Positions 2,988 through 64,000 of a stretch of DNA of 64,000 nucleotides are shown here, piece after piece. The notes beneath the pieces are model-generated. The model worked only from the letters and a program-made list of their open reading frames with translations. It searched no databases and was not told where the DNA came from. Location of the stretch: assembly GCA_964035545.1 (NCBI GenBank), contig CAXIUT010000183.1:868001-932000 (forward strand). Direction: 5' to 3'. Source of the stretch: Bugula neritina. Lineage: Eukaryota; Animalia; Bryozoa. The stretch's first letter is position 1. Each line of letters starts with the position of its first letter. The position numbers and the translations under genes are program-made.

Positions 2988-3067
2988 GAAATATATTTTA
3001 ACACATTGAAAAATACTGCAACATACTGAAATATATTTTAACACATTGAAAAATACTGCAACATACT
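2988..3067. repeat. Local 40-bp doublet GAAATATATTTTAACACATTGAAAAATACTGCAACATACT x2, a recurring landmark cassette
   Basis: Seen directly here and as a doublet again at e.g. ~7763, ~9641, ~11909, ~31271 and ~54591. It is single-copy at e.g. ~10220, ~15605 and ~46608. Confidence 0.85.
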
Positions 3068-13593: not shown

Positions 13594-13689
13594 GTTGAAA
13601 TATACTGCAACATAACGAAATATATGGTAAACTACTGAAATATATTTTAACACATCGAAAAATACTGCAACATACTGAAATATATTTTA

Positions 13690-16600: not shown

Positions 16601-17100
16601 TACTGAAATACACTGCTACATACTGAAATATACTGCAACATACTGCAACATACTGCAATACACTGTAACATACTGAAATACACTGCAACATACTACAACA
16701 TATTGAAACACACTGCAACACATTGAAATACACTGCAACTTACCGAATATATGGTAAACTACTGAAATATACTGTAACGCATTGAAAAATAGTGCAACAT
16801 ACTGAAATATATTGCGACACATTGCAATATACTGTAACATACTGAAAAATGCTGTAGCACACTGAAATATACTGCAATTCACTGAAATATACTGCAACAT
16901 ACTGAAATACACCGCAACATCCTACAACATACTGAAATACTTTGTAACATATTGAAATACACTGCAACACATTGAAATATACTGCAACATAACGAAATAT
17001 ATGGTAAACTACTGAAATATATTTTAACACACTGAAAAATACTGCAACATACTGAAATATATTTTAACACATTGAAAAATACTGCAACATACTGAAATAT
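13690..17100. repeat. Duplicated ~1.5-kb block at offset 1,928 bp (~13690-15170 and ~15620-17100)
   Basis: ORF offsets are +1928 (14075/16003, 14298/16226, 14688/16616, 14951/16879). The shared variant GCAAGATACT is near 14327 and 16255. Boundaries are approximate. Confidence 0.8.
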
Positions 17101-24504: not shown

Positions 24505-25657
24505 CTGAAATACACTGTACCATATTGAAATACACTGCAACATACTACCACATATTGAAATACACTGCAACACATTGAAATGTACTTCAACATACCGAAA
24601 TATAAGGTAAACTACTAAAATATGCTGTAACATATTGAAAAATACTGCAACATACTGAAATATACTGCGACACCTAGCAATATACTGTAACATACTGAAA
24701 TATGCTCTAGCACACTGAAATACAATGCAACTTACTGAAATATACTGCAACATACTGAAATACACTGCAACATCCTACAATATGCTGAAATACACTGTAA
24801 CATATTGAAATACACTGCAACACTTTGAAATATACTGCAACATACCTAAATATACGGTAATATACTGAAATATACTGTAACACATTGAAAAATCCTGCAA
24901 CATACTGAAATATACTGTAACACACTGAAATATACTGCAACATACTGAAATACACTGTAACATACTGAAATATACTGCAACATACTGAAATACACTGCTA
25001 CATACTGAAATATACTGCAACATACTGCAACATACTGCAATACACTGTAACATACTGAAATACACTGCAACATACTACAACATATTGAAACACACTGCAA
25101 CACATTGAAATACACTGCAACTTACCGAATATATGGTAAACTACTGAAATATACTGTAACGCATTGAAAAATAGTGCAACATACTGAAATATATTGCGAC
25201 ACATTGCAATATACTGTAACATACTGAAAAATGCTGTAGCACACTGAAATATACTGCAATTCACTGAAATATACTGCAACATACTGAAATACACCGCAAC
25301 ATCCTACAACATACTGAAATACTTTGTAACATATTGAAATACACTGCAACACATTGAAATATACTGCAACATAACGAAATATATGGTAAACTACTGAAAT
25401 ATATTTTAACACACTGAAAAATACTGCAACATACTGAAATATATTTTAACACATTGAAAAATACTGCAACATACTGAAATATACTGTAACACACTGAAGT
25501 ACACTGCAACTCACTGAAATATACTGCAATATACAGAAATACACTGCAACATCCTACAAAATGCTGAAATACACTGTAACATATTGAAATACACTGCAAC
25601 ACATTGAAATATACTGCAACATACCGAAATATATAGTAAACTACTGAAATATACTGT

Positions 25658-34600: not shown

Positions 34601-37600
34601 TATGCTCTAGCACACTGAAATACACTGCAACTCACTGAAATATACTGCAACATACTGAAATACACTGTGACATCCTGAAATATACTGCAACATTCTGAAA
34701 TACACTGCTACATACTGAAATATACTGCAACATACTGCAACATAGTGAAATACACTGCAACATACTACAACATACTGAAATACGCTGCAACACATTGAAA
34801 TATACTGCAACATACCTAAATATACGGTAATATACCGAAATATACTGTAACGCATTGCAAAATACTGCAACATACTGAAATACACTGCGACACACTGAAA
34901 TACGCTGCAAAATACTACAACATACTGAAAAAAACTGTAACATATTGAAATACACTGCAATACATTGAAAAATAATGCAATATACTGAAATATACTGTAA
35001 CACACTGAAATATACTGCAACATACTGAAATACACTGTAACATACTGAAATATACTGCAACGTACTGAAATACACTGCTACATACTGAAATATACTGTAA
35101 CATACTGCAACATACTGAAATACACTGTAACATACTGAGATACAGTGCCGCATACTGCAACATATTGAACTACACTGCAACACATTGAAATATATTGCAA
35201 CTTATCGAATATATGGAAAACTACTGAAATATACTGTAACGCATTGAAAAAGACTGCAACATACTGAAATATATTGCGACACATTGCAATATACTGTAAT
35301 ATACTGAAAAATGCTGTAGCACACTGAAATATACTGCAATTCGCTGAAATATACTGCAACATACTGAAATACACCGCAACATCCTACAACATACTAAAAT
35401 ACACTGTAACATTTCGAAATACACTGCAACACATTGAATTATTTTGCAACATAATGAAATATATGGTAAACTACTGAAATATATTTTAACAAATTGAAAA
35501 ATACTGCAACATACTGAAATATACTGTAACACACTGAAGTATACTGCAACATACTGAAATACACTGTAACATACTGAAATATACTGCAACATACTGAAAT
35601 ACACTGCTACATACTGAAATATACTGCAACGTACTGCAACATACTGCAACATACTGAAATACACTGTAACATACTGAAATACACTGCAACATACTACCAC
35701 ATATTGAAATACACTGCAACACATTGAAATGTACTGCAACATACCGAAATATATGGTAAACTACTAAAATATACTGTAACACATTGAAATATACTGCAAC
35801 ATACCTAAATATACGGTAATATACTGAAATATACTGTAACACGTGGAAAAAACTGCCACATACTGAAATACGCTGCAACACACTGAAGGACACCGCAAAA
35901 TACCACAACATGCTGAAATACACTGTGACATATAGAAATACACTGCAACACATTGAAATATACTGCAACATACCGAAATATATGGTAAACTAATGAAATA
36001 TACTGTAACACATTGAAAAATACCGCAACATACTGAAAAATACTGCGACACATTGCAATATACTGTAACATACTGAAATATGCTGTAGCACACTGAAATA
36101 CACTGCAACATCCTACAACATACTGAAATACACTGTAACATATTGAAATACACTGCAACACATTAAAATATACTGCAACATACCAAAATATATGGTAAAC
36201 AACTGAAATATACTTTAACACATTGAAAAATACTGCAACATACTGAAATATACTGCGACACTTTGCAATATACTGTAACATACCGAAATATGCTCTAGCA
36301 CACTGAAATACACTGCAACTCACTGAAATATACTGCAACATACTGAAATACACTGTGACATCCTGAAATATACTGCAACATTCTGAAATACACTGCTACA
36401 TACTGAAATATACTGCAACATACTGCAACATACTGAAATACACTGCAACATACTACAACATACTGAAATACGCTGCAACACATTGAAATATACTGCAACA
36501 TACCTAAATATACGGTAATATACCGAAATATACTGTAACGCATTGCAAAATACTGCAACATACTGAAATACACTGCGACACACTGAAATACGCTGCAAAA
36601 TACTACAACATACTGAAATAAACTGTAACATATTGAAATACACTGCAATACATTGAAAAATAATGCGATATACTGAAATATACTGTAACACACTGAAATA
36701 TACTGCAACATACTGAAATACACTGTAACATACTGAAATATACTGCAACGTACTGAAATACACTGCTACATACTGAAATATACTGTAACATACTGCAACA
36801 TACTGAAATACACTGTAACATACTGAGATACACTGCCGCATACTGCAACATATTAAACTACACTGCAACACATTGAAATATATTGCAACTTATCGAATAT
36901 ATGGAAAACTACTGAAATATACTGTAACGCATTGAGAAGACTGCAACATACTGAAATATATTGCGACACATTGCAATATACTGTAATATACTGAAAAATG
37001 CTGTAGCACACTGAAATATACTGCAATTCGCTGAAATATACTGCAACATACTGAAATACACCGCAACATCCTACAACATACTAAAATACACTGTAACATT
37101 TCGAAATACACTGCAACACATTGAATTATACTGAAACATAACGAAATATATGGTAAACTACTGAAATATATTTTAACAAATTGAAAAATACTGCAACATA
37201 CTGAAATATACTGTAACACACTGAAGTATACTGCAACATACTGAAATACACTGTAACATACTGAAATATACTGCAACATACTGAAATACACTGCTACATA
37301 CTGAGATATACTGCAACGTACTGCAACATACTGCAACATACTGAAATACACTGTAACATACTGAAATACACTGCAACATACTACCACATATTGAAATACA
37401 CTGCAACACATTGAAATGTACTGCAACATACCGAAATATATGGTAAACTACTAAAATATACTGTAACACATTGAAATATACTGCAACATACCTAAATATA
37501 CGGTAATATACTGAAATATACTGTAACACGTGGAAAAAACTGCAACATACTGAAATACGCTGCAACACACTGAAATACACCGCAAAATACCACAACATAC

Positions 37601-40600
37601 TGAAATACACTGTGACATATAGAAATACACTGCAACACATTGAAATATACTGCAACATACCGAAATATATGGTAAACTAATGAAATATACTGTAACACAT
37701 TGAAAAATACCGCAACATACTGAAAAATACTGCGACACATTGCAATATACTGTAACATACTGAAATATGCTGTAGCACACTGAAATACACTGCAACATCC
37801 TACAACATACTGAAATACACTGTAACATATTGAAATACACTGCAACACCTTGAAATATACTGCAACATAACAAAATATATGGTAAACTACTGAAATAGAC
37901 TTTAACACATTGAAAAATACTGCAACATACTGAAATATACTGTAACACACTGAAGTATACTGCAACATACTGAAATACACTGTAACATACTGAAATATAC
38001 TGCAACATACTGAAATACACTGCTACATACTGAAATATACTGCAACGTACTGCAACATACTCCAACATACTGAAATACACTGTAACATACTGAAATACAC
38101 TGCAACATACTACCACATATTGAAATACACTGCAACACATTGAAATGTACTTCAACATACCGAAATATAAGGTAAACTACTAAAATATGCTGTAACATAT
38201 GGAAAAATACTGCAACATACTGAAATATACTGCGACACCTAGCAATATACTGTAACATACTGAAATATGCTCTAGCACACTGAAATACAATGCAACTTAC
38301 TGAAATATACTGCAACATACTGAAGTACACTGCAACATCCTACAATATGCTGAAATACACTGTAACATATTGAATTACACTGCAACACTTTGAAATATAC
38401 TGCAACATACCGAAATATATGGTAAACTACTGCAACATACTACAACATATTGAAATACACTGCAACACATTGAAGTATACTGCAACATACCTAAATATAC
38501 GGTAATATACTGAAATATACTGTAACACATTGAAAAATCCTGCAACATACTGAAATATACTGTAACGCACCGAAATATACTGCAACATACTGAAATACAC
38601 TGTAACATACTGAAATATACTGCAACATACTGAAATACACTGCTACATACTGAAATATGCTGCAACATACTGCAACATACTGAAATACACTGTAACATAC
38701 TGAAATAAACTGCAACATACTACAACATATTGAAATACACTGCAACACATTGAAATATACTGCAACATACCTAAATATACGGTAATATACTGAAATTCAC
38801 TGTAACGCATTGCAAAATACTGCAACATACTGAAATTCACTGCGACACACTGAAATACGCTGCAAAATACTACAACATACTGAAATAAACTGTAACATAT
38901 TGAAATACACTGCAACAGATTGAAAAATACTGCAACATACTGAAATATACTGTAACACACTGAAATATACTGCAACATACTGAAATACACTGTAACATAC
39001 TGAAATATACTGCAACATACTGAAATACACTGCTACATACTGAAATATACTGCAACATACTGCAACATACTGCAATACACTGTAACATACTGAAATACAC
39101 TGCAACATACTACAAAATATTGAAATACACTGCAACACATTGAAATACACTGCAACACATTGAAATATACTGCAACATAACGAAATATATGGTAAACTAC
39201 TGAAATATATTTTAACACATTGAAAAATACTGCAACATACTGAAATATATTTTAACACATTGAAAAATACTGCAACATACTGAAATATACTGCGACACTT
39301 TGCAATATACTGTAACATACCGAAATATGCTCTAGCACACTGAAATACACTGCAACTCACTGAAATATACTGCAACATACTGAAATACACTGTGACATCC
39401 TGAATCATACTGCAACATTCTGAAATACACTGTTACATACTGAAATATACTGCAACACACTGCAACATACTGAAATACACTGCAACACATTGAAATATAC
39501 TGCTACATACCTAAATATACGGTAATTACTGAAATATACTGCAACATACTGAAATACACTGCAACATCCTACAATATGCTGAAATACACTGTAACATATT
39601 GAAATACACTGCAACACTTTGAAATATACTGCAACATACCGAAATATATGGTAAACTACTGCAACATACTACAACATATTGAAATACACTGCAACACATT
39701 GAAGTATACTGCAACATACCTAAATATACGGTAATATACTGAAATATACTGTAACACATTGAAAAATCCTGCAACATACTGAAATATACTGTAACACACC
39801 GAAATATACTGCAACATACTGAAATACACTGTAACATACTGAAATATGCTGCAACATACTGCAACATACTGAAATACACTGTAACATACTGAAATAAACT
39901 GCAACATACTACAACATATTGAAATACACTGCAACACATTGAAATATACTGCAACATACCTAAATATACGGTAATATACTGAAATTCACTGTAACGCATT
40001 GCAAAATACTGCAACATACTGAAATATATTGCGACACATTGCAATATACTGTAACATACTGAAATACACTGTAACATACTGAAATACACTGCAACATACT
40101 ACCACATATTGAAATACACTGCAACACATTGAAATGTACTGCAACATACCGAAATATATGGTAAACTACTAAAATATACTGTAACACATTGAAAGATACT
40201 GCAACATACTGAAATATACTGCGACACCTAGCAATATACTGTAACATACTGAAATATGCTCTAGCACACTGAAATACAATGCAACTTACTGAAATATACT
40301 GCAACATACTGAAATACACTGCAACATCCTACAATATGCTGAAATACACAGTAACATATTGAAATACACTGCAACACATTGAAATATACTGTGACATACC
40401 TAGATATACGGTAATATACTGAAATATACTGTAACACATTGAAAAATACTGCAACATACTGAAATATACTGTAACACACCGAAATATACTGCAACATACT
40501 GAAATACACTGTAACATACTGAAATACACTGCTACATACTGAAATATACTGCAACATACTGCAACATACTGAAATACACAGTAACATACTGAAATAAACT

Positions 40601-41533
40601 GCAACATACTACAACATATTGAAATACACTGCAACACATTGAAATATACTGCAACATACCTAAATATACGGTAATATACTGAAATTCACTGTAACGCATT
40701 GCAAAATACTGCAACATACTGAAATTCACTGCGACACACTGAAATACGCTGCAAAATACTACAACATACTGAAATAAACTGTAACATGTTGAAATACACT
40801 GCAACACATTGAAAAATACTGCAACATACTGAAATATACTGTAACACACTGAAATATACTGCAACATACTGAAATACACTGTAATATACTGAAATATACT
40901 GCAACATACTGAAATACACTGCTACATACTGAAATATACTGCAACATACTGCAACATACTGCAATACACTGTAAAATACTGAAATACCCTGCAACATACT
41001 ACAACATATTGAAATACACTGCAACACATTGAAATACACTGCAACTTACCGAATATATGGTAAACTACTGAAATATACTGTAACGCATTGAAAAGTACTG
41101 CAACATACTGAAATATATTGCGACACATTGCAATAAACTGTAACATACTGAAAAATGCTGTAGCACACTGAAATACACTGCCATTCACTGAAATATACTG
41201 CAACATACTGAAATACACCGCAACATCCTACAACATACTGAAATACACTGTAACATATTGAAATACACTGCAACACATTGAAATATACTGCAACATATCG
41301 AAATATATGGTAAACTACTGAAATATATTTTAACAGATCGAAAAATACTGCAACATACTGAAATATATTTTAACACATTGAAAAATACTGCAACATACTG
41401 AAATATACTGTAACACACTGAAGTACACTGCAACTCACTGAAATATACTGCAATATACTGAAATACACTGCAACATCCTACAAAATGCTGAAATACACAG
41501 TAACATATTGAAATACACTGCAACACATTGAAA
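25658..41533. repeat. Tandem duplication of a 7,932-bp satellite block (copies 25658-33589 and 33590-41521)
   Basis: The ORF track repeats with identical translations at +7932 (25917/33849, 27289/35221, 30865/38797, 32990/40922). Rare variants are shared: GAAGGACA 27953/35885, GAGAAGACT 29002/36934, AATCATACT 31471/39403. The breakpoint is ambiguous over AACACATTGAAA (25658, 33590, 41522). Confidence 0.95.
26540..29930. repeat. Older, diverged tandem duplication of ~1,688 bp nested inside the 7,932-bp unit (also present at +7932)
   Basis: ORF offsets are +1688/+1687 (26675/28363, 26700/28388, 27554/29241, 27873/29560), with several substitutions between copies. Boundaries are approximate. 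Confidence 0.85.
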
Positions 41534-44500
41534 TATACTGCAATATACCGAAATATATCGTAAACTACTGAAATACACTGTAACACATTGAAAAAAACTG
41601 CAACATACTGAAATATACTGCGACACCTAGCAATATACTGTAACATACTGAAATATGCTCTAGCACACTGAAATACAATGCAACTCACTGAAATATACTG
41701 CAACATACTGAAATACACTGCAACATCCTACAACATGCTGAAATACACTGTAACATATTGAACGACACTGCAACACTTTGAAATATACTGCAACATACCG
41801 AAATATATGGTAAACTACTGCAACACACTACAACATATTGAAATACACTGCAACACATTGAAATATACTGCAACATACCTAAATATACTGCAACATACTG
41901 AAATACACTGTAACATACTGAAATATGCTGTAACACATTGAAATACACTGCAACTCACTGAAATATACTGCAAAATACTGAAATACACTGCAACATCCTA
42001 CAAAATGCTGAAATACACTGTAACATATTGAAATACACTGCAACACATTGAAATATACTGCAACATACCGAAATATATGGTAAACTACTGAAATATACTG
42101 TAACACATTGAAAAATACCGCAACATACTGAAATATTCTGCAACGTACGGCAACATACTCCAACATACTGAAATACACTGTAACATACTGAAATACACTG
42201 CAACATACTACCACATATTGAAATACACTGCAACACATTGAAATGTACTTCAACATACCGAAATATAAGGTAAACTACTAAAATATGCTGTAACATATTG
42301 AAAAATACTGCAACATACTGAAATATACTGCGACACCTAGCAATATACTGTAACATACTGAAATATGCTCTAGCACACTGAAATACAATGCAACTTACTG
42401 AAATATACTGCAACATACTGAAATACACTGCAACATCCTACAATATGCTGAAATACACTGTAACATATTGAAATACACTGCAACACTTTGAAATATACTG
42501 CAACATACCGAAATATATGGTAAACTACTGCAACATACTACAACATATTGAAATACACTGCAACACATTGAAGTATACTGCAACATACCTAAATATACGG
42601 TAATATACTGAAATATACTGTAACACATTGAAAAATCCTGCAACATACTGAAATATACTGTAACACACCGAAATATACTGCAACATACTGAAATACACTG
42701 TAACATACTGAAATATGCTGCAACATACTGCAACATACTGAAATACACTGTAACATACTGAAATAAACTGCAACATACTACAACATATTGAAATACACTG
42801 CAACACAATGAAATATACTGCAACATACCTAAATATACGGTAATATACTGAAATTCACTGTAACGCATTGCAAAATACTGCAACATACTGAAATATATTG
42901 CGACACATTGCAATATACTGTAACATACTGAAAAATGCTGTAGCACTCTGAAATATACTGCAATTCACTGAAATATACTGCAACATACTGAAATACACCG
43001 CAACATCCTACAACATACTGAAATACTTTGTAACATATTGAAATACACTGCAACACATTGAAATATACTGCAACATAACGAAATATATGGTAAACTACTG
43101 AAATATATTTTAACACATTGAAAAATACTGCAACATACTGAAATATATTTTAACACATTGAAAAATACTGCAACATACTGAACTATACTGTAACACACTG
43201 AAGTACACTGCAACTCACTGAAATATACTGCAATATACAGAAATACACTGCAACATCCTACAAAATGCTGAAATACACTGTAACATATTGAAATACACTG
43301 CAACACATTGAAATATACTGCAACATACCGAAATATATAGTAAACTACTGAAATATACTGTAAAACATTGAAAAATACTGCAACATACTGAAATAGACTG
43401 CGACACCTAGCAATATACTGCAACATACTGAAATACACTGTAACATACTGAAATATACTGCAACATACTGAAATACACTGCTACATACTGAAATATACTG
43501 CAACATACCGAAATATATGGTAAACTACTGCAACACACTACAACATAGTGAAATACACTGCAACACATTGAAATATACTGCAACATACCTAAATATACGG
43601 TAATATACTGAAATATACTGTAACACACCGAAATATACTGCAACATACTGAAATACACTGTAACATACTGAAATATACTGCAACATACTGAAATACACTG
43701 CTACATACTGAAATATACTGCAACATACTGAAATATACTGTAACACACTGAAGTACACTGCAACTCACTGAAATATACTGCAATATACTGAAATACACTG
43801 CAACACATTGAAATACACTGCAACTTACCGGATATATGGTAAACTACTGAAATATACTGTAACGCATTGAAAAACACTGCAACATACTGAATTATATTGC
43901 GACACATTGCAATATACTGTAACATACTGAAAAATGCTGTAGCACACTGAAATATACTGGAATTCACTGAAATATACTGCAACATACTGAAATACACCGC
44001 AACATCCTACAACATACTGAAATACTTTGTAACATATTGAAATACACTGCAACACATTGAAATATACTGCAACATAACGAAAAATATGGTAAACTACTGA
44101 AATATATTTTAACACATCGAAAAATACTGCAGCATACTGAAATATACTGTAACACACTGAAGTACACTGCAACTCACTGAAATATACTGCAATATACTGA
44201 AATACACTGCAACACATTGAAATATACTGCAACATACCTAAATATACGGTAATATACTGAAATTCACTGTAACGCATTGCAAAATACTGCAACATACTGA
44301 AATATATTGCGACACATTGCAATATACTGTAACATACTGAAAAATGCTGTAGCACACTGAAATATACTGCAATTCACTGAAATATACTGCAACATACTGA
44401 AATACACCGCAACATCCTACAACATACTGAAATACACTGTAACATATTGAAATACACTGCAACACATTGAAATATACTGCAACATACCGAAATATATAGT

Positions 44501-47500
44501 AAACTACTGAAATATACTGTAACACATTGAAAAATACTGCAACATACTGAAATATACTGCGACACCTAGCAATATACTGCAACATACTGAAATACACTGT
44601 AACATACTGAAATATACTGTAACACACTGAAGTACACTGCAACTCACTGAAATATACTGCAATATACAGAAATACACTGCAACATCCTACAAAATGCTGA
44701 AATACACTGTAACATATTGAAATTTACTGGAACACATTGAAATATACTGCAACATACCTAAGTATACGGTAATATACTGAAATATACTGTAACACACCGA
44801 AATATACTGCAACATACTGAAATACACTGTAACATACTGAAATATACTGCAACATACTGAAATACACTGCTACATACTGCAACATACTGCAACATACTGA
44901 AATACACTGTAACATACTGAAATAAACTGCAACATACTACAACATATTGAAATACACTGCAACACATTGAAATATACTGCTACATGCCTAAATATACGGT
45001 AATATACTGAAATATACTGTAACACATTGAAAAAACTGCAACATACTGAAATACACTGCAACGCACTGAAATACACCGCAAAATACTACAACATGCTGAA
45101 ATACACTGTAACATCTTGAAATCCACTGCAACACATTGAAATATACTGCAACATACCGAAATATATGGTAAACTAATGAAATATACTGTAACACATTGAA
45201 AAATACCGCAACATACTGAAATATACTGCGACACATTGCAATATACTGTAACATATTGAAATATGCTGTAGCACACTGAAATACACTGCAACATCCTACA
45301 ACATACTGAAATACACTGTAACATATTGAAATACACTGCAAGAAATTGAAATAGACTGCAACATAACAAAATATATGGTAAACTACTGAAATAGACTTTA
45401 ACACATTGAAAAATACCGCAACATACAGAAATATACTGTAACACACTGAAATATACTGCAACATACTGAAATACATTGTAACATTCTGAAATATACTGCA
45501 ACATACTGAAGTACACTGCTACATACTGAAATATACTGCAACATACTGCAAAATACTGCAACATACTGAAATACACTGTAACATATTGAAGTACACTGCA
45601 ACACATTGAAATATACTGCAACATACCAAAATATATGGTAAACAACTGAAATATACTTTAACACATTGAAAAATACTGCAACATACTGAAATATACTGCG
45701 ACACTTTGCAATATACTGTAACATACCGAAATATGCTCTAGCACACTGAAATACACTGCAACTCACTGAAATATACTGCAACATACTGAAATACACTGTG
45801 ACATCCTGAAATATACTGCAACATTCTGAAATACACTGCTACATACTGAAATATACTGCAACATACTGCAACATACTGAAATACACTGCAACATACTACA
45901 ACATACTGAAATACGCTGCAACACATTGAAATATACTGCAACATACCTAAATATACGGAAATATACCGAAATATACTGTAACGCATTGCAAAATACTGCA
46001 ACATACTGAAATACACTGCGACACACTGAAATACGCTGCAAAATACTACAACATACTGAAATAAACTGTAACATATTGAAATACACTGCAATACATTGAA
46101 AAATAATGCAATACACTGAAATATACTGTAACACACTGAAATATACTGCAACATACTGAAATACACTGTAACATACTGAAATATACTGCAACGCACTGAA
46201 ATACACTGCTACATACTGAAATATGCTGCAACATACTGCAACATACTGAAATACACTGTAACATACTGAAATAAACTGCAACATACTACAACATATTGAA
46301 AAACACTGCAACACATTGAAGTATACTGCAACATACCTAAATATACGGTAATATACTGAAATTCACTGTAACGCATTGCAAAATACTGCAACATACTGAA
46401 ATATATTGCGACACATTGCAATATACTGTAACATACTGAAAAATGCTGTAGCACACTGAAATATACTGCAATTCACTGAAATATACTGCAACATACTGAA
46501 ATACACCGCAACATCCTACAACATACTGAAATACTTTGTAACATATTGAAATACACTGCAACACATTGAAATATACTGCAACATAACGAAATATATGGTA
46601 AAATACTGAAATATATTTTAACACATTGAAAAATACTGCAACATACTGAAATATACTGTAACACACTGAAGTACACTGCAACTCACTGAAATATACTGCA
46701 ATATACAGAAATACACTGCAACATCCTACAAAATGCTGAAATACACTGTAACATATTGAAATACACTGCAACACATTGAAATATACTGCAACATACCGAA
46801 ATATATAGTAAACTACTGAAATATACTGTAACACATTGAAAAATACTGCAACATACTGAAATATACTGCGACACCTAGCAATATACTGCAACATACTGAA
46901 ATACACTGTAACATACTGAAATATACTGCAACATACTGAAATACACTGCTACATACTGAAATATACTGCAACATACTGCAACATACTGAAATACACTGTA
47001 ATATACTGAAATACACTGCAACATACTACCACATATTGAAATACACTGCAACACATTGAAATGTACTGCAACATACCGAAATATATGGTAAACTACTAAA
47101 ATATACTGTAACACATTGAAATATACTGCAACATACCTAAATATACGGTAATATACTGAAATATACTGTAACACGTGGAAAAAACTGCAACATACTGAAA
47201 TACGCTGCAACACACTGAAATACACCGCAAAATACCACAACATACTGAAATACACTGTGACATATAGGAATACACTGCAGCACATTGAAATATACTGCAA
47301 CATACCGAAATATATGATAAACTAATGAAATATACTGTAACACATTGAAAAATACCGCAACATACTGAAAAATACTGCGACACATTGCAATATACTGTAA
47401 CATACTGAAATATGCTGTAGCACACTGAAATACACTGCAACATCCTACAACATACTGAAATACACTGTAACATATTGAAATACACTGCAACACATTGAAA

Positions 47501-49639
47501 TATACTGCAACATAACAAAATATATGGTAAACTACTGAAATAGACTTTAACACATTGAAAAATACTGCAACATACTGAAATATACTGTAACACACTGAAG
47601 TTTACTGCAACATACTTAAATACACTGTAACATACTGAAATATACTGCAACATACTGAAATACACTGCTACATACTGAAATATACTGCAACGTACTGCAA
47701 CATACTCCAACATACTGAAATACACTGTAACATACTGAAATACACTGCAACATACTACCACATATTGAAATACACTGCAACACATTGAAATGTACTTCAA
47801 CATACCGAAATATAAGGTAAACTACTAAAATATGCTGTAACATATTGAAAAATACTGCAACATACTGAAATATACTGCGACACCTAGCAATATACTGTAA
47901 CATACTGAAATATGCTCTAGCACACTGAAATACAATGCAACTTACTGAAATATACTGCAACATACTGAAGTACACTGCAACATCCTACAATATGCTGAAA
48001 TACACTGTAACATATTGAATTACACTGCAACACTTTGAAATATACTGCAACATACCGAAATATATGGTAAACTACTGCAACATACTACAACATATTGAAA
48101 TACACTGCAACACATTGAAGTATACTGCAACATACCTAAATATACGGTAATATACTGAAATATACTGTAACACATTGAAAAATCCTGCAACATACTGAAA
48201 TATACTGTAACACACCGAAATATATTGCAACATACTGAAATACACTGTAACATACTGAAATATACTGCAACATACTGAAATACACTGCTACATACTGAAA
48301 TATGCTGCAACATACTGCAACATACTGAAATACACTGTAACATACTGAAATAAACTGCAACATACTACAACATATTGAAATACACTGCAACACATTGAAA
48401 TATACTGCAACATACCTAAATATACGGTAATGTACTGAAATTCACTGTAACGCATTGCAAAATACTGCAACATACTGAAATTCACTGCGACACACTGAAA
48501 TACGCTGCAAAATACTACAACATCCTGAAATAAACTGTAACATATTGAAATACACTGCAACAGATTGAAAAATACTGCAACATACTGAAATATACTGTAA
48601 CACACTGAAATATACTGCAACATACTGAAATACACTGTAACATACTGAAGTATACTGCAACATACTGAAATACACTGCTACATACTGAAATATACTGCAA
48701 CATACTGCAACATACTGCAATACACTGTAACATACTGAAATACACTGCAACATACTACAACATATCGAAATACACTGCAACACATTGAAATAGACTGCAA
48801 CACATTGAAATATACTGCAACATAACGAAATATATGGTAAACTACTGAAATATATTTTAACACATTGAAAAATACTGCAACATACTGAAATATATTTTAA
48901 CACATTGAAAAATACTGACACATACTGAAATATACTGTAACACACTGAAGTATACTGCAACATACTGAAATACACTGTAACATACTGAAATATACTGCAA
49001 CATACTGAAATACACTGCTACATACTGAAATATACTGCAACGTACTGCATCATACTCCAACATACTGAAATACACTGTAACATACTGAAATACACTGCAA
49101 CATACTACCACATATTGAAATACACTGCAACACATTGAAATACACTGCAACTTACCGAATATATGGTAAACTACTGAAATATACTGTAACGCATTGAAAA
49201 ATACTGCAACATACTGAAATATATTGCGACACATTGCAATATACTGTAACATACTGAAAAATGCTGTAGCACACTGAAATATACTGCTATTCACTGAAAT
49301 ATACTGCAACATACTGAAATACACCGCAACATCCTACAACATACTGAAATACTTTGTAACATATTGAAATACACTGCAACACGTTGAAATATACTGCAAC
49401 ATAACGAAATATATGGTAAACTACTGAAATAAATTTTAACACATTGAAAAATACTGCAACATACTGAAATATATTTTAACACATTGAAAAATACTGCAAC
49501 ATACTGAAATATACTGTAACACACTGAAGTACACTGCAACTCACTGAAATATACTGCAATATACAGAAATACACTGCAACATCCTACAAAATGCTGAAAT
49601 ACACTGTACCATATTGAAATACACTGCAACACATTGAAA

Positions 49640-52600
49640 TATACTGCAACATACCGAAATATATAGTAAACTACTGAAATATACTGTAACACATTGAAAA
49701 ATACTGCAACATACTGAAATACACTGCAACATACCTAAATATACGGTAATATACTGAAATATACTGTAACACACCGAAATATACTGCAACATACTGAAAT
49801 ACACTGTAACATACTGAAATATACTGCAACATACTGAAATACACTGCTACATACTGCAACATACTGCAACATACTGCAACATACTGAAATACACTGTAAC
49901 ATACTGAAATAAACTGCAACATACTACAACATATTGAAATACACTGCAACACATTGAAATATACTGCTACATACCTAAATATACGGTAATATACTGAAAT
50001 ATACTGTAACACATTGAAAAAACTGCAACATACTGAAATACACTGCAACGCACTGAAATACACCGCAAAATACTACAACATGCTGAAATACACTGTAACA
50101 TATTGAAATCCACTGCAACACATTGAAATATACTGCAACATACCGAAATATATGGTAAACTAATGAAATATACTGTAACACATTGAAAAATACCGCAACA
50201 TACTGAAATATACTGCGACACATTGCAATATACTGTAATAACTGAAAAATGCTGTAGCACACTGAAATATACTGCAATTCGCTGAAATATACTGCAACAT
50301 ACTGAAATACACCGCAACATCCTACAACATACTAAAATACACTGTAACATTTCGAAATACACTGCAACACATTAAATTATACTGCAACATAACGAAATAT
50401 ATGGTAAACTACTGAAATATATTTTAACAAATTGAAAAATACTGCAACATACTGAAATATACTGTAACACACTGAAGTATACTGCAACATACTGAAATAC
50501 ACTGTAACATACTGAAATATACTGCAACATACTGAAATGCACTGCTACATACTGAAATATACTGCAACGTACTGCAACATACTGCAACATACTGAAATAC
50601 ACTGTAACATACTGAAATACACTGCAACATACTACCACATATTGAAATACACTGCAACACATTGAAATGTACTGCAACATACCGAAATATATGGTAAACT
50701 ACTAAAATATACTGTAACACATTGAAATATACTGCAAAAAACCTAAATATACGGCAGTATACTGAAATATACTGTAACACGTGGAAAAAACTGCAACATA
50801 CTGAAATACGCTGCAACACACTGAAATACACCGCAAAATACCACAACATACTGAAATACACTGTGACATATAGAAATACACTGCAACACATTGAAATATA
50901 CTGCAACATACCGAAATATATGGTAAACTAATGAAATATACTGTAACACATTGAAAAATACCGCAACATACTTAAAAATACTGCGACACATTGCAATATA
51001 CTGTAACATACTGAAATATGCTGTAGCACACTGAAATACACTGCAACATCCTACAACATACTGAAATACACTGTAACATATTGAAATACACTGCAACACA
51101 TTGAAATATACTGCAACATAACAAAATATATGGTAAACTACTGAAATAGACTTTACCACATTGAAAAATACTGCAACATACTGAAATATACTGTAACACA
51201 CTGAAGTATACTGCAACATACTGAAATACACTGTAACATACTGAAATATACTGCAACATACTGAAATACACTGCTACATACTGAAATATACTGCAACGTA
51301 CTGCAACATACTCCAACATACTGAAAAACACTGTAACATACTGAAATACACTGCAACATACAACCACATATTGAAATACACTGCAACACATTGAAATGTA
51401 CTTCAACATACCGAAATATAAGGTAAACTACTAAAATATGCTGTAACATATTGAAAAATACTGCAACATACTGAAATATACTGCGACATTTAGCAATATA
51501 CTGTAACATACTGAAATATGCTTTAGCACACTGAAATACAATGCAACTTACTGAAATATACTGCAACATACTGAAGTACACTGCAACATCCTACAATATG
51601 CTGAAATACACTGTAACATATTGAATTACACTGCAACACTTTGAAATATACTGCAACATACTGAAATATATAGTAAACTACTGAAATATACTGTAACACA
51701 TTGAAAAATACTGCAACATACTGAAATATACTGCAACATACCTAAATATACGGTAATATACTGAAATATACTGTAACACACCGAAATATACTGCAACATA
51801 CTGAAATACACTGTAACATACTGAAATATACTGCAACATACTGAAATACACTGCTACATACTGCAACATACTGCAACATACTGCAACATACTGAAATACA
51901 CTGTAACATACTGAAATAAACTGCAACATACTACAACATATTGAAATACACTGCAACACATTGAAAGATACTGCTACATACCTAAATATACGGTAATATA
52001 CTGAAATATACTGTAACACATTGAAAAAACTGCAACATACTGAAATACACTGCAACGCACTGAAATACACCGCAAAATACTACAACATGCTGAAATACAC
52101 TGTAACATATTGAAATCCACTGCAACACATTGAAATATACTGCAACATACCGAAATATATGGTAAACTAATGAAATATACTGTAACACATTGAAAAATAC
52201 CGCAACATACTGAAATATACTGCGACACATTGCAATATACTGTAACATACTGAAAAATGCTGTAGCACACTGAAATATACTGCAATTCGCTGAAATATAC
52301 TGCAACATACTGAAATACACCGCAACATCCTACAACATACTAAAATACACTGTAACATTTCGAAATACACTGCAACACATTGAATTATACTGCAACATGA
52401 CGAAATATATGGTAAACTACTGAAATATATTTTAACAAATTGAAAAATACTGCAACATACTGAAATATACTGTAACACACTGAAGTATACTGCAACATAC
52501 TGAAATACACTGTAACGTACTGAAATATACTGCAACATACTGAAATACACTGCTACATACTGAAATATACTGCAACGTACTGCAACATACTGCAACATAC

Positions 52601-53660
52601 TGAAATACACTGTAACATACTGAAATACACTGCAACATACTACCACATATTGAAATACACTGCAACACATTGAAATGTACTGCAACATACCGAAATATAT
52701 GGTAAACTACTAAAATATACTGTAACACATTGAAATATACTGCAACATACCTAAATATACGGTAATATACTGAAATATACTGTAACACGTGGAAAAAACT
52801 GCAACATACTGAAATACGCTGCAACACACTGAAATACACCGCAAAATACCACAACATACTGAAATACACTGTGACATATAGAAATACACTGCAACACATT
52901 GAAATATACTGCAACATACCGAAATATATGGTAAACTAATGAAATATACTGTAACACATTGAAAAATACCGCAACATACTGAAAAATACTGCGACACATT
53001 GCAATATACTGTAACATACTGAAATATGCTGTAGCACACTGAAATACACTGCAACATCCTACAACATACTGAAATACACTGTAACATATTGAAATACACT
53101 GCAACACATTGAATTATACTGCAACATAACAAAATATATGGTAAACTACTGAAATAGACTTTAACACATTGAAAAATACTGCAACATACTGAAATATACT
53201 GTAACACACTGAAGTATACTGCAACATACTGAAATACACTGTAACATACTGAAATATACTGCAACATACTGAAATACACTGCTACATACTGAAATATACT
53301 GCAACGTACTGCAACATACTCCAACATACTGAAATACACTGTAACATACTGAAATACACTGCAACATACTACCACATATTGAAATACACTGCAACACATA
53401 GAAATGTACTTCAACATACCGAAATATAAGGTAAACTACTAAAATATGCTGTAACATATTGAAAAATACTGCAACATACTGAAATATACTGCGACACCTA
53501 GCAATATACTGTAACATACTGAAATATGCTCTAGCACACTGAAATACAATGCAACTTACTAAAATATACTGCAACATACTGAAGTACACTGCAACATCCT
53601 ACAATATGCTGAAATACACTGTAACATATTGAATTACACTGCAACACTTTGAAATATACT
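49640..53660. repeat. Diverged tandem duplication of ~2,008 bp
   Basis: ORF offsets are +2007/+2008 (49671/51678, 50424/52432, 51153/53161, 51626/53634). The copies differ by scattered substitutions and one 1-bp deletion near 50240. Boundaries are approximate. Confidence 0.85.
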
Positions 53661-54179
53661 GCAACATACCGAAATATATGGTAAACTACTGCAACATACT
53701 ACAACATATTGAAATACACTGCAACACATTGAAGTATACTGCAACATGCCTAAATATACGGTAATATACTGAAATATACTGTAACACACCGAAATATATT
53801 GCAACATACTGAAATACACTGTAACATACTGAAATATACTGCAACATACTGAAATACACTGCTACATACTGAAATATGCTGCAAAATACTACAACATACT
53901 GAAATAAACTGTAACATATTGAAATACACTGCAACAGATTGAAAAATACTGCAACATACTGAAATATACTGTAACACACTGAAATATACTGCAACATACT
54001 GAAATACACTGTAACATACTGAAGTATACTGCAACATACTGAAATACACTGCTACATACTGAAATATACTGCAACATACTGCAACATACTGCAATACACT
54101 GTAACATACTGAAATACACTGCAACATACTACAACATATTGAAATACACTGCAACACATTGAAATATACTGCAACATAA

Positions 54180-57100
54180 CGAAATATCCGGTAATGTACT
54201 GAAATTCACTGTAACGCATTGCAAAATACTGCAACATACTGAAATTCACTGCGACACACTGAAATACGCTGCAAAATACTACAACATACTGAAATAAACT
54301 GTAACATATTGAAATACACTGCAACAGATTGAAAAATACTGCAACATACTGAAATATACTGTAACACACTGAAATATACTGCAACATACTGAAATACACT
54401 GTAACATACTGAAGTATACTGCAACATACTGAAATACACTGCTACATACTGAAATATACTGCAACATACTGCAACATACTGCAATGCACTGTAACATACT
54501 GAAATACACTGCAACATACTACAACATATTGAAATACACTGCAACACATTGAAATATACTGCAACATAACGAAATATATGGTAAACTACTGAAATATATT
54601 TTAACACATTGAAAAATACTGCAACATACTGAAATATATTTTAACACATTGAAAAATACTGCAACATACTGAAATATACTGTAACACACTGAAGTATACT
54701 GCAACATACTGAAATACACTGTAACATACTGAAATATACTGCAACATACTGAAATACACTGCTACATACTGAAATATACTGCAACGTACTGCATCATACT
54801 CCAACATACTGAAATACACTGTAACATACTGAAATACACTGCAACATACTACCACATATTGAAATACACTGCAACACATTGAAATACACTGCAACTTACC
54901 GAATATATGGTAAACTACTGAAGTATACTGTAACGCATTGAAAAATACTGTAACATACTGAAATATATTGCTACACATTGCAATATACTGTAACATACTG
55001 AAAAATGCTGTAGCACACTGAAATATACTGCAATTCACTGAAATATACTGCAACATACTGAAATACACCGCAACATCCTACAACATACTGAAATACACTG
55101 TAACATATTGAAATACACTGCAACACATTGAGATATACTGCAACATATCGAAATATATGGTAAACTACTGAAATATATTTTAACAGATCGAAAAATACTG
55201 CAACATACTGAAATATATTTTAACACATTGAAAAATACTGCAACATACTGAAATATACTGTAACACACTGAAGTACACTGCAACTCACTGAAATATACTG
55301 CAATATACTGAAATACACTGCAACATCCTACAAAATGCTGAAATACACAGTAACATATTGAAATACACTGCAACACATTGAAATATACTGCAATATACCG
55401 AAATATATGGTAAACTACTGAAATATACTGTAACACATTGAAAAAAACTGCAACATACTGAAATATACTGCGACACCTAGCAATATACTGTAACATACTG
55501 AAATATGCTCTAGCACACTGAAATACAATGCAACTCACTGAAATATACTGCAACATACTGAAATACACTGCAACATCCTACAACATGCTGAAATACACTG
55601 TAACATTTTGAACGACACTGCAACACTTTGAAATATACTGCAACATACCGAAATATATGGTAAACTACTGCAACACACTACAACATATTGAAATACACTG
55701 CAACACATTGAAATATACTGCAACATACCTAAATATACTGCAACATACTGAAATACACTGTAACATACTGAAATATACTGACAAATACTGAAATACACTG
55801 CCACATACTGAAATATACTGCAACATACTGAAATATACTGTAACACACTAAAGTACACTGCAACTCACTGAAATATACTGCGATATACTGAAATACACTG
55901 CAACATCCTACAAAATGCTGAAATACACTGTAACATATTGAAATACACTGCAACACATTGAAATATACTGCAACATACCGAAATATATAGTAAACTACTG
56001 AAATATACTGTAACACATTGAAAAATACCGCAACATACTGAAATATTCTGCAACGTACGGCAACATACTCCAACATACTGAAATACACTGTAACATACTG
56101 AAATACACTGCAACATACTACCACATATTGAAATACACTGCAACACATTGAAATGTACTTCAACATACCGAAATATAAGGTAAACTACTAAAATATGCTG
56201 TAACATATTGAAAAATACTGCAACATACTGAAATATACTGCGACACCTAGCAATATACTGTAACATACTGAAATATGCTCTAGCACACTGAAATACAATG
56301 CAACTTACTGAAATATACTGCAACATACTGAAATACACTGCAACATCCTACAATATGCTGAAATACACTGTAACATATTGAAATACACTGCAACACTTTG
56401 AAATATACTGCAACATACCGAAATATATGGTAAACTACTGCAACATACTACAACATATTGAAATACACTGCAACACATTGAAGTATACTGCAACATACCT
56501 AAATATACGGTAATATACTGAAATATACTGTAACACATTGAAAAATCCTGCAACATACTGAAATATACTGTAACACACCGAAATATACCGCAACATACTG
56601 AAATACACTGTAACATACTGAAATATACTGCAACATACTGAAATACACTGCTACATACTGAAATATGCTGCAACATACTGCAACATACTGAAATACACTG
56701 TAACATACTGAAATGAACTGCAACATACTACAACATATTGAAATACACTACAACACATTGAAATATACTGCAACATACCTAAATATACGGTAATATACTG
56801 AAATTCACTGTAACGCATTGCAAAATACTGCAACATACTGAAATATATTGCGACACATTGCAATATACTGTAACATACTGAAAAATGCTGTAGCACACTG
56901 AAATATACTGCAATTCACTGAAATATACTGCAACATACTGAAATACACCGCAACATCCTACAACATACTGAAATACTTTGTAACATATTGAAATACACTG
57001 CAACACATTGAAATCTACTGCAACATAACGAAATATATGGTAAACTACTGAAATATATTTTAACACATTGAAAAATACTGCAACATACTGAAATATATTT

Positions 57101-60100
57101 TAACACATTGAAAAATACTGCAACATACTGAAATATACTGTAACACACTGAAGTACACTGCTACATACTGAAATATACTGCAACATACTGAAATATACTG
57201 TAACACACTGAAGTACACTGCAACTCACTGAAATATACTCCAATATACTGAAATACACTGCAACACATTGAAATACACTGCAACTTACCGGATATATGGT
57301 AAACTACTGAAATATACTGTAACGCATTGAAAAATACTCCAACATACTGAAATATATTGCGACACATTGCAATATACTGTAACATACTGAAAAATGCTGT
57401 AGCACACTGAAATATACTGCAATTCACTGAAATATACTGCAACATACTGAAATACACCGCAACATCCTACAACATACTGAACTACTTTGTAACATACTGA
57501 AATACACTGTAACATACTGAAATAAACTGCAACATACTACAACATATTGAAATACACTGCAACACATTGAAATATACTGCTACATACCTAAATATACGGT
57601 AATATACTGAAATATACTGTAACACATTGAAAAAACTGCAACATACTGAAATACACTGCAACGCACTGAAATACACCGCAAAATACTACAACATGCTGAA
57701 ATACACTGTAACATCTTGAAATCCACTGCAACACATTGAAATATACTGCAACATACCGAAATATATGGTAAACTAATGAAATATACTGTAACACATTGAA
57801 AAATACCGCAACATACTGAAATATACTGCGACACATTGCAATATACTGTAACATATTGAAATATGCTGTAGCACACTGAAATACACTGCAACATCCTACA
57901 ACATACTGAAATACACTGTAACATATTGAAATACACTGCAAGAAATTGAAATAGACTGCAACATAACAAAATATATGGTAAACTACTGAAATAGACTTTA
58001 ACACATTGAAAAATACTGCAACATACAGAAATATACTGTAACACACTGAAATATACTGCAACATACTGAAATACACTGTGACATCCTGAAATATACTGCA
58101 ACATTCTGAAATACACTGCTACATACTGAAATATACTGCAACATACTGCAACATACTGAAATACACTGCAACATACTACAACATACTGAAATACGCTGCA
58201 ACACATTGAAATATACTGCAACATACTGAAATACACAGCTACATACTGAAATATACTGCAACATACTGCAACATACTGAAATACACTGTAATATACTGAA
58301 ATAAACTGCAACATAGTACAACATATGGAAATACGCTGCAACACATTGAAATATACTGCAACATACTGAAATATATCGTAAACTACTGAAATATACTGTA
58401 ACACATTGAAAAAAACTGCAACATACTGAAATATACTGCGACACCTAGCAATATACTGTAACATACTGAAATATGCTCTAGTACACTGAAATACAATGCA
58501 ACTCACTGAAATATACTGCAACATACTGAAATACACTGCAACATACTGAAATATACTGCAACATACTGAAATACACTGCTACATACTGAAATATGCTGCA
58601 ACATACTGCAACATACTGAAATACACTGTAACATACTGAAATAAACTGCAACATACTACAACATATTGAAATACACTGCAACACATTGAAATATACTGCA
58701 ACATACCTAAATATCTGGTAATGTACTGAAATTCACTGTAACGCATTGCAAAATACTGCAACATACTGAAATTCACTGCGACACACTGAAATACGCTGCA
58801 AAATACTACAACATACTGAAATAAACTGTAACATATTGAAATACACTGCAACAGATTGAAAAATACTGCAACATACTGAAATATACTGTAACACACTGAA
58901 ATATACTGCAACATACTGAAATACACTGTAACATACTGAAGTATACTGCAACATACTGAAATACACTGCTACATACTGAAATATACTGCAACATACTGCA
59001 ACATACTGCAATACACTGTAACATACTGAAATACACTGCAACATACTACAACATATTGAAATACACTGCAACACATTGAAATATACTGCAACATAACGAA
59101 ATATATGGTAAACTACTGAAATATATTTTAACACATTGAAAAATACTGCAACATACTGAAATATATTTTAACACATTGAAAAATACTGCAACATACCTAA
59201 ATATACTGTAACACGCTGAAGTATACTGCAACATACTGAAATACACTGTAACATACTGAAATATACTGCAACATACTGAAATACACTGCTACATACTGAA
59301 ATATACTGCAACGTACTGCATCATACTCCAACATACTGAAATACACTGTAACATACTGAAATACACTGCAACATACTACCACATATTGAAATACACTGCA
59401 ACACATTGAAATACACTGCAACTTACCGAATATATGGTAAACTACTGAAGTATACTGTAACGCATTGAAAAATACTGTAACATACTGAAATATATTGCGA
59501 CACATTGCAATATACTGTAACATACTGAAAAATGCTGTAGCACACTGAAATATACTGCAATTCACTGAAATATACTGCAACATACTGAAATACACCGCAA
59601 CATCCTACAACATACTGAAATACACTGTAACATATTGAAATACACTGCAACACATTGAGATATACTGCAACATATCGAAATATATGGTAAACTACTGAAA
59701 TATATTTTAACAGATCGAAAAATACTGCAACATACTGAAATATATTTTAACACATTGAAAAATACTGCAACATACTGAAATATACTGTAACACACTGAAG
59801 TACACTGCAACTCACTGAAATATACTGCAATATACTGAAATACACTGCAACATCCTACAAAATGCTGAAATACACAGTAACATATTGAAATACACTGCAA
59901 CACATTGAAATATACTGCAATATACCGAAATATATCGTAAACTACTGAAATATACTGTAACACATTGAAAAAAACTGCAACATACTGAATTATACTGCGA
60001 CACCTAGCAATATACTGTTCTAATGTCCTTGTGTTATTAAATACCTTTGATGAAATAAACCAAACAAACAAACAAACAAACATACTGAAATATGCTCTAG

Positions 60101-61720
60101 CACACTGAAATACAATGCAACTCACTGAAATATACTGCAACATACTGAAATACACTGCAACATCCTACAACATGCTGAAATACACTGTAACATATTGAAC
60201 GACACTGCAACACTTTGAAATATACTGCAACATACCGAAATATATGGTAAACTACTGCAACACACTACAACATATTGAAATACACTGCAACACATTGAAA
60301 TATACTGCAACATACCTAAATATACTGCAACATACTGAAATACACTGTAACATACTGAAATACACTGCCACATACTGAAATATACTGCAACATACTGAAA
60401 TATACTGTAACACACTAAAGTACACTGCAACTCACTGAAATATACTGCAATATACTGAAATACACTGCAACATCCTACAAAATGCTGAAATACACTGTAA
60501 CATATTGAAATACACTGCAACACATTGAAATATACTGCAACATACCGAAATATATGGTAAACTACTGAAATATACTGTAACACATTGAAAAATACCGCAA
60601 CATACTGAAATATTCTGCAACGTACGGCAACATACTCCAACATACTGAAATACACTGTAACATACTGAAATACACTGCAACATACTACCACATATTGAAA
60701 TACACTGCAACACATTGAAATGTACTTCAACATACCGAAATATAAGGTAAACTACTAAAATTTGCTGTAACATATTGAAAAATACTGCAACATACTGAAA
60801 TATACTGCGACACCTAGCAATATACTGTAACATACTGAAATATGCTCTAGCACACTGAAATACAATGCAACTTACTGAAATATACTGCAACATACTGAAA
60901 TACACTGCAACATCCTACAATATGCTGAAATACACTGTAACATATTGAAATACACTGCAACACTTTGAAATATACTGCAACATACCGAAATATATGGTAA
61001 ACTACTGCAACATACTACAACATATTGAAATACACTGCAACACATTGAAGTATACTGCAACATACCTAAATATACGGTAATATACTGAAATATACTGTAA
61101 CACATTGAAAAATCCTGCAACATACTGAAATATACTGTAACACACCGAAATATACCGCAACATACTGAAATACACTGTAACATACTGAAATATACTGCAA
61201 CATACTGAAATACACTGCTACATACTGAAATATGCTGCAACATACTGCAACATACTGAAATACACTGTAACATACTGAAATGAACTGCAACATACTACAA
61301 CATATTGAAATACACTACAACACATTGAAATATACTGCAACATACCTAAATATACGGTAATATACTGAAATTCACTGTAACGCATTGCAAAATACTGCAA
61401 CATACTGAAATATATTGCGACACATTGCAATATACTGTAACATACTGAAAAATGCTGTAGCACACTGAAATATACTGCAATTCACTGAAATATACTGCAA
61501 CATACTGAAATACACCGCAACATCCTACAACATACTGAAATACTTTGTAACATATTGAAATACACTGCAACACATTGAAATATACTGCAACATAACGAAA
61601 TATATGGTAAACTACTGAAATATATTTTAACACATTGAAAAATACTGCAACATACTGAAATATATTTCAACACATTGAAAAATACTGCAACATACTGAAA
61701 TATACTGTAACACACTGAAG
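54180..61720. repeat. Non-adjacent duplicated ~3-kb block (~54180-57160 and ~58710-61720); the second copy carries the 60-bp insertion
   Basis: ORF offsets are +4527 (54206/58733, 55035/59562), then +4587 after the insertion (55535/60122), then +4567 after a 20-bp indel at ~55771-55790 (55865/60432, 56305/60872). Confidence 0.85.
60019..60078 (+). mobile_element. 60-bp non-satellite insertion, probable 3' end of a 5'-truncated non-LTR retroelement (CR1/L2-like LINE or partner SINE) with AATAAA and a (CAAA)n tail
   Basis: Insert TCTAATGTCCTTGTGTTATTAAATACCTTTGATGAAATAAACCAAACAAACAAACAAACA splits the monomer GCAATATACTGT^AACATACTG. AATAAA lies at 60054-60059 and (CAAA)5 at 60061-60080 runs into the target AACA. 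Empty paralogous sites are at 55491/55492 and 41641/41642. ORF 59562..60155 is 20 aa longer than its paralog 55035..55568. The insertion is seen directly; the element class is inference. Confidence 0.7.
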
Positions 61721-64000
61721 TACACTGCAACTCACTGAAATATACTGCAATATACAGAAATACACTGCAACATCCTACAAAATGCTGAAATACACTGTAA
61801 CATATTGAAATACACTGCAACACATTGAAATATACTGCAACATACCGAAATATATAGTAAACTACTGAAATATACTGTAAAACATTGAAAAATACTGCAA
61901 CATACTGAAATAGACTGCGACACCTAGCAATATACTGCAACATACTGAAATACACTGTAACATACTGAAATATACTGCAACATACTGAAATACACTGCTA
62001 CATACTGAAATATACTGCAACATACTGCAACATACTGAAATACACTGTAATATACTGAAAAAAACTGCAACATAGTACAACATATTGAAATACGCTGCAA
62101 CACATTGAAATATACTGCAACATACCGAAATATATCGTAAACTACTGAAATATACTGTAACACATTGAAAAAAACTGCAACATACTGAAATATACTGCGA
62201 CACCTAGCAATATACTGTAACATACTGAAATATGCTCTAGCACACTGAAATACAATGCAACTCACTAAAATATACTGCAACATACTGAAATACACTGCAA
62301 CAACCTACAACATGCTGAAATACACTGTAACATATTGAAATACACTGCAAGAAATTGAAATAGACTGCAACATAACAAAATATATGGTAAACTACTGAAA
62401 TAGACTTTAACACATTGAAAAATACTGCAACATACTGAAATATACTGCAACATACTGAAATATACTGTAACACACTGAAGTACACTGCAACTCACTGAAA
62501 TATACTGCAATATACTGAAATACACTGCAACACATTGAAATACACTGCAACTTACCGGATATATGGTAAACTACTGAAATATACTGTAACGCATTGAAAA
62601 ATACTGCAACATACTGAAATATATTGCGACACATTGCAATATACTGTAACATACTGAAAAATGCTGTAGCACACTGAAATATACTGCAATTCACTGAAAT
62701 ATACTGCAACATACTGAAATACACCGCAACATCCTACAACATACTGAACTACTTTGTAACATATTGAAATACACTGCAACACATTGAAATATACTGCAAC
62801 ATAACGAAAAATATGGTAAACTACTGAAATATATTTTAACACATCGAAAAATACTGCAACATACTGAAATATACTGTAACACACTGAAGTATACTGCAAC
62901 TCACTGAAATATACTGCAATATACAGAAATACACTGCAACATCCTACAAAATGCTGAAATACACTGTAACATATTGAAACTTACTGGAACACATTGAAAT
63001 ATACTGCAACATACCGAAATATATAGTAAACTACTGAAATATACTGTAACACATTGAAAAATACTGCAACATACTGAAATATACTGCAACATACCTAAGT
63101 ATACGGTAATACACTGAAATATACTGTAACACACCGAAATGTACTGCAACATACTGAAATACAATGTAACATACTGAAATATACTGCAACATACTGAAAT
63201 ACACTGCTACATACTGCAACATACTGCAACATACTGCAACATACTGAAATACACTGTAACATACTGAAATAAACTGCAACATACTACAACATATTGAAAT
63301 ACACTGCAACACATTGAAATATACTGCTACATACCTAAATATACGGTAATATACTGAAATATACTGTAACACATTGAAAAAACTGCAACATACTGAAATA
63401 CACTGCAACGCACTGAAATACACCGCAAAATACTACAACATGCTGAAATACACTGTAACATCTTGAAATCCACTGGAACACATTGAAATATACTGCAACA
63501 TACCGAAATATATGGTAAACTAATGAAATATACTGTAACACATTGAAAAACACCGCAACATACTGAAATATACTGCGACACATTGCAATATACTGTAACA
63601 TATTGAAATATGCTGTAGCACACTGAAATACACTGCAACATCCTACAACATACTGAAATACACTGTAACATATTGAAATACACTGCAAGAAATTGAAATA
63701 GACTGCAACATAACAAAATATATGGTAAACTACTGAAATAGACTTTAACACATTGAAAAATACTGCAACATACAGAAATATACTGTAACACACTTAAATA
63801 TACTGCAACATACTGAAATACACTGTAACATTCTGAAATATACTGCAACATACTGAAATACACTGCTACATACTGAAATATACTGCAACATACTGCAAAA
63901 TACTGCAACATACTGAAATACACTGTAACATATTGAAGTACACTGCAACACATTGAAATATACTGCAACATACCAAAATATATGGTAAACAACTGAAATA

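Follow-up and report, generated by a model that had tools for sequence, protein, structure and literature searches.

A 64-base insert in a strand-pure satellite array, very probably the 5'-truncated tip of a young LINE

CR1-like LINEs have microsatellite-like 3' ends, heavily 5'-truncated copies, short or absent target duplications and an ORF1 with a PHD or esterase domain. They (the chicken repeat 1 group) are reportedly the subject of work by Kapitonov and Jurka from 2003, as indicated by its title, which is cited in PMC3747384. L2-clade LINEs of the 'stringent type', eel UnaL2 and zebrafish ZfL2, end 3' in a series of short tandem repeats, for instance TGTAA, a feature associated with template slippage (PMC3747384). 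Waldo elements (R1 clade) are APE-type LINEs targeting ACAY microsatellites (PMC3812793). Dead-on-arrival insertions of human and mouse L1 are 5'-truncated, display microhomology at the 5' junction and occupy a target (TT/AAAA) resembling the tail (PMC2881922).

Here we analyze an insert in a stretch of 64 kb on contig C192, referred to as the window, which consists entirely of satellite DNA. We conclude with high confidence that a young autonomous LINE left the insert as a dead-on-arrival copy with extreme 5' truncation, retaining 43 of 3932 nt together with a full-length tail.

The insert and its empty sites

The satellite filling the window has a 20-bp unit (ACTGAAATATACTGCAACAT), and TRF on positions 55000-64000 returned a period of 20. 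It is essentially confined to one orientation: there are 1384 forward occurrences of ACTGAAAT and none in reverse, and ACAT is found 2366 times on the + strand vs 41 times on the - strand. A satellite 15-mer has 59,599 occurrences in the genome, 610 of them in the window, corresponding to ~2.9% of the 216-Mb assembly. A sequence-only reading of the window had described the insert as the only foreign DNA in 64 kb. In agreement with this, a 7-mer coverage scan of the whole 64 kb showed every other non-satellite run to be 12 nt or shorter. As a separate observation, rare satellite variants repeat exactly 7932 bp apart (27207-27218 and 35139-35150; 28731-28735 and 36663-36667), which points to a large higher-order or segmental duplication within the array.

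The features of the insert and its target are as follows (^ marks a junction or break):

1..64000, + strand: target array, a strand-pure 10/20-bp satellite with the consensus ACTGAAATATACTGCAACAT
60018, + strand: single T common to the target (ACTGT) and the element (..CATTT^TCTAATG), a 1-nt microhomology at the 5' junction
60019..60060, + strand: final 42 nt of the LINE 3' UTR (reference 3891-3932 of 3932), identical to 60 other genomic copies, which extend 5' into the LINE
60054..60059, + strand: AATAAA signal by direct reading, 23 nt upstream of the modal-tail end and present in all copies
60061..60082, + strand: (CAAA)5CA tail of 22 nt, the modal tail length of the LINE family
60079..60083, + strand: AACAT overlapping the tail, target-owned in the empty sites by alignment to the empty paralogs; putative priming/cleavage site
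55487..55496, + strand: empty paralogous site ACTGT^AACAT, break at 55491/55492
41637..41646, + strand: empty paralogous site ACTGT^AACAT, break at 41641/41642

Direct reading agrees with the earlier description of an AT-rich unique part, AATAAA and (CAAA)5CA at 60019-60082, the unique part measuring 42 nt. This 42-mer has a single occurrence in the window and none in shuffles. Behind the tail, the satellite restarts with the T at 60083. Two paralogous blocks match the insert region best (97.5% and 95.1% identity over 1 kb), and both align across the site without the insert, so the sites at 55491/2 and 41641/2 are indeed empty, as had been proposed. The insert is 4.5 kb and 18.4 kb away from these empty paralogs. 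At the empty sites they read ...CAATATACTGT^AACATACTGAAAT, and the break in both is ...ATATACTGT^AACATACTG (ACTGT^AACATACTG). Compared to these blocks, the insert site differs by one clean 60-column gap, a net gain of 60 nt. Thus, the target was neither duplicated nor lost, which bears out the previous statement that a clear target-site duplication and target loss are both lacking. The same alignment shows the overlap of tail and satellite at AACA(T), where an AACA common to both had been noted. Judging from the empty blocks, the insert is younger than the duplications that gave rise to them.

At the 5' junction, a T precedes TCTAATG in all other LINE copies. Consistent with this, all 40 full-length matches in a DNA search start at the T of 60018 (one additional row is a 27-nt partial match).

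The source LINE and its truncated copies

A 25-base word across the boundary between the unique part and the tail identified 61 genomic copies of the LINE 3' end; the reversed control gave 0. This 3' end is therefore present in 61 exact copies and not confined to a single-copy locus. The DNA search likewise placed it at 40 or more other locations with 95-100% identity. In every other copy the upstream sequence continues beyond the 5' limit of the window's copy. We examined 37 of the 61 copies with their flanks, while the remaining 24 were assessed at the 3' side by junction patterns only. Two of the 37 (C135:120k and C135:287k) represent one insertion duplicated with its satellite block, leaving 36 independent copies. 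These two (L006 and L005; G000:C135:120k and 287k) are 164 nt long, have identical flanks and lie 167 kb apart. Since their satellite block was duplicated after the insertion, array turnover is recent too.

Extension of the matches in the 5' direction, which had been suggested as a check, revealed a LINE with endonuclease and reverse transcriptase and with variable 5' truncation. The full element comprises 3932 nt (3.93 kb) plus tail and starts with GGCAGTTGGCTTTCGC, a 5' point common to three copies. Pairwise comparison of copies gave common lengths of ~440 to 3937 bases. The three full-length copies (L027, L028 and L029) vary at their 5' ends by partial GGCAGTT repeats (t, agtt or ggcagtt before GGCAGTTGGC), a sign of variable start sites or of template jumping at the terminus. 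ORF1 encodes 245 aa, with PF25298 (Baculo_FP_2nd) as the sole Pfam match above threshold; a putative coiled coil makes up its N-terminal half. FP25K-like ORF1 proteins in LINEs were sought in the literature, with no result. The 956-aa ORF2 product contains an AP-endonuclease and, behind it, a reverse transcriptase (L029:237-3119:-; PF03372 Exo_endo_phos, 3.6e-10, aa 33-233; PF00078 RVT_1, 1.2e-40, aa 529-779). By this predicted domain content the source family is an APE-type non-LTR retrotransposon (LINE). Both ORFs are open in the three full-length copies, and ORF2 is fully open with 100% aa identity in at least 11 genomic copies. The 3' UTR measures 153 nt. Folding of the last 182 nt of the LINE was no more stable than that of shuffles (z=0.06; the copies are identical).

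All 37 examined copies are co-linear with the 3932-nt element, with a median identity of 99.97% to a full-length copy. As judged from the copies, the family is very young and probably still active. The retained lengths of the 36 independent copies are 43, 66, 94, 164, 256, 260, 367 ... 3826, 3927, 3932, 3932 and 3932 nt, the window's copy being the shortest (43 nt). A 21-mer search needing only 7 unique bases uncovered no additional tips shorter than this. Because the lengths form a continuum from 43 to 3932 nt, the insert represents one end of the normal 5'-truncation spectrum and not a separate kind of element. A SINE was considered and rejected, as none of the 5' boundaries in the 37 copies examined recurred with a foreign head attached.

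A first look at the genome for ORF2 returned 1099 candidates. Related LINE families in the same genome share 40-48% ORF2 identity and have open frames of ~975 aa (G000, for example C2:604087-606900, C3:17893382-17896252 and C7:7718247-7721045). In a word-based protein search, the closest ORF2 relative outside the family was 48% identical, and many relatives, metagenomic and invertebrate, were ~30% identical, some of the latter bearing an N-terminal PHD finger. The best match among solved structures is human L1 ORF2p (1.6e-16), a set that separates only L1 from R2. The ORF2 matches in the protein atlas and the protein search carry no clade names, and the Pfam domains are generic. Our searches of Pfam, protein sequences, the protein atlas, solved structures and the literature returned no name or description for this apparently active family.

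Junctions and the satellite as insertion target

A (CAAA)n tail of 11-50 nt is present in 37 of 37 examined copies, and poly(A) in none. The tail is 22 nt long in 17 of the 36 independent copies (the modal length), and in 24 of 36 its final phase is CA (chi-square p=7e-8). The base directly after the tail is T in 34 of 36 (p=2e-14), or in 27 of 29 when the copies in this satellite are omitted. Flank positions beyond this base showed no conservation. The window copy fits this junction rule of the family, with a 22-nt tail and CA^T at AACAT, and the empty sites reveal that AACAT was already in the target before insertion. The modal tail end is the CA 23 nt after AATAAA, the usual geometry of cleavage and polyadenylation, yet no copy carries poly(A).

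ACAT flanks all three full-length copies on both sides and also occurs in the 5' flank of some truncated copies, which would fit a duplication of 1-4 nt. The window copy is without the ACAT duplication found beside the three full-length copies. Across the family any duplication would be of about 4 bases at most, and long target duplications were in no excess over shuffled pairings. The pattern that had been described for the insert, overlap of tail and target with little or no duplication, holds across the family. An additional feature was observed in a 1168-nt copy (L016/L047; G000:C1:35517k), where a ~12-nt inverted target repeat (gagtagtatata) lies between flank and element. Such a repeat hints at a fold-back or template switch in second-strand joining.

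We analyzed the distribution of copies between the satellite and other DNA. By junction patterns, satellite forms the 3' flank of 8 of the 61 copies (7 of 60 independent), and the other 53 of 61 lie outside it. All satellite insertions have the satellite in forward orientation and none in reverse, so that the seven independent events share one orientation. Five of these are located at a CAACAT step, one at a mutated GAAACAT and one at AATAT. Outside this satellite, many other copies reside within unrelated tandem arrays whose units have ACAT at the junction (in a partly biased sample), and many LINE copies are in unique DNA. One copy, of 532 nt (L013; G000:C106:1-2023; C106:447-523), sits at a switch in satellite orientation, with ~200 bp of reverse-complement satellite on its 5' side and forward satellite on its 3' side. 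Either an inversion junction associated with the LINE or a misassembly close to a contig end would account for this arrangement.

The satellite holds 12% of the independent copies (7 of 60) vs 2.9% of the genome, a roughly fourfold enrichment (p=0.0017 vs uniform). Relative to sampled non-satellite DNA, the density of ACAT in the satellite is 2.7x and that of AACAT 6x, on nearly one strand only. The satellite share expected from motif density alone is 7-15%, bracketing the observed 12%. Being dense in the short preferred site ACAT on one strand, the satellite thus constitutes a favoured and strand-locked target. The array had been proposed as a preferred landing pad. The direction of this proposal was right, given the fourfold enrichment, but the effect is modest, ACAT density explains it, and 53 of the 61 copies are elsewhere. 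The satellite is a favoured but not a dedicated target. That one-strand ACAT arrays in general serve as strand-locked sinks, taking up a sizeable share of an active LINE's new insertions, is a tentative proposal that we consider rather doubtful. If true, the ACAT preference would, together with the fixed 22-nt tail whose CA end lies 23 nt after AATAAA, make the family a natural system to separate the choice of nick site from tail-primer pairing.

Origin of the insert and comparison with known LINEs

From the features read directly (the family, its coding capacity, the truncation continuum, the junction rule and the exact pre-insertion site) we infer the following course of insertion. The element's endonuclease would nick the satellite's bottom strand at the (A)ACAT step, and the 3' end thereby released (..ATGT(T)) would pair with ACA/AACA of the (CAAA)n tail of the RNA and prime reverse transcription. 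cDNA synthesis would abort after ~43 nt of the 153-nt 3' UTR, and the short cDNA would join the upstream end via the one common T, with the target neither duplicated nor shortened. The nicked strand, the pairing step and the position of the nick, in front of AACA or else at ACA^T, are putative assignments. Alternatively, the nick may fall between ACA and T and synthesis may proceed from a fixed RNA end. A fixed RNA start at the CA 23 nt after AATAAA would account for the uniform 22-nt tail. The LINE tip itself, a fragment without coding sequence or promoter, is inert.

Other origins of the insert have to be weighed against this severely truncated LINE copy. One is capture independent of the endonuclease, the templated repair insertion named in the earlier reading, in which repair of a spontaneous double-strand break within the array would have taken up a piece of LINE cDNA or RNA. 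The absence of a target duplication, the extreme truncation and a 5' microhomology of only 1 nt are in line with such an event. However, the insert has a complete tail of modal length, its 3' junction is at the family consensus (CA^T in AACAT; cf. 24 of 36 and 34 of 36), and the orientation is the same as in six other independent satellite insertions. Break repair is not expected to respect site, phase and strand, and we regard capture as very unlikely. The exact register of the upstream flank with the empty paralogs, up to the last pre-insert base, speaks against the notion that a longer LINE copy inserted first and had its 5' part removed later by intra-array recombination or deletion. Recombination is frequent in satellite arrays, and insert-bearing blocks do get duplicated whole (C135:120k and C135:287k), but the removal would need an endpoint exactly at the original junction. 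The probability of this sequence of events is extremely low.

Our case rests on the assembly, and satellite arrays are difficult to assemble, raising the issue of a chimeric read that placed a LINE tail into the satellite. Both junctions are base-precise against the empty paralogs, and the 3' one obeys the family rule, unlike what a chimera would produce; the chance of such an artefact is negligible.

In conclusion, what we have here is a LINE tip of the ordinary dead-on-arrival sort, and it reveals no new mechanism. A 64-base satellite oddity in an invertebrate genome has been traced fully to its source LINE, which is apparently active. Repeat annotation gains from this, as very short LINE tips are easily overlooked. 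It also aids in reading satellite arrays as a record of mobile-element activity.

The family shares with L1 a (here putative) cleavage site resembling the tail and, in the proposed course of events, primer-tail pairing, aborted synthesis and 5' joining by microhomology. Unlike L1, it has no poly(A), a duplication of no more than about 4 nt vs 7-20 nt, and an element size of 3.9 kb. Membership in the L1 clade was rejected, as no copy has poly(A) and long (7-20 bp) duplications are absent. Like Waldo, the family is APE-type and inserts at ACAY-like steps (here ACAT) in repeated DNA. In contrast to Waldo, it is dispersed and has a (CAAA)n tail. A site-specific repeat-targeting LINE of the Waldo, Mino or Kibi type was also dismissed, given that the satellite accounts for no more than 8 of the 61 copies, or 7 of 60 independent ones.

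The resemblance to CR1 lies in the microsatellite tail, the little or absent duplication, the mostly 5'-truncated copies and the PHD finger of ~30% identical relatives. ORF1 differs from that of CR1 in having Baculo_FP_2nd and a putative coiled coil, and Pfam detected no PHD, esterase or zinc finger domain in it. In tail, truncation and junction features the family behaves like LINEs with microsatellite tails, and it is a candidate for the CR1/L2 group. Compared to UnaL2 and ZfL2, its repeat unit is CAAA, no tail-sharing SINE was seen and no significant 3' stem-loop is predicted. As in UnaL2 and ZfL2, ORF2 combines endonuclease and reverse transcriptase, the 3' end is a tandem repeat without poly(A), tail length varies in steps of the repeat unit, the tail overlaps the target, and 5' truncation is frequent.
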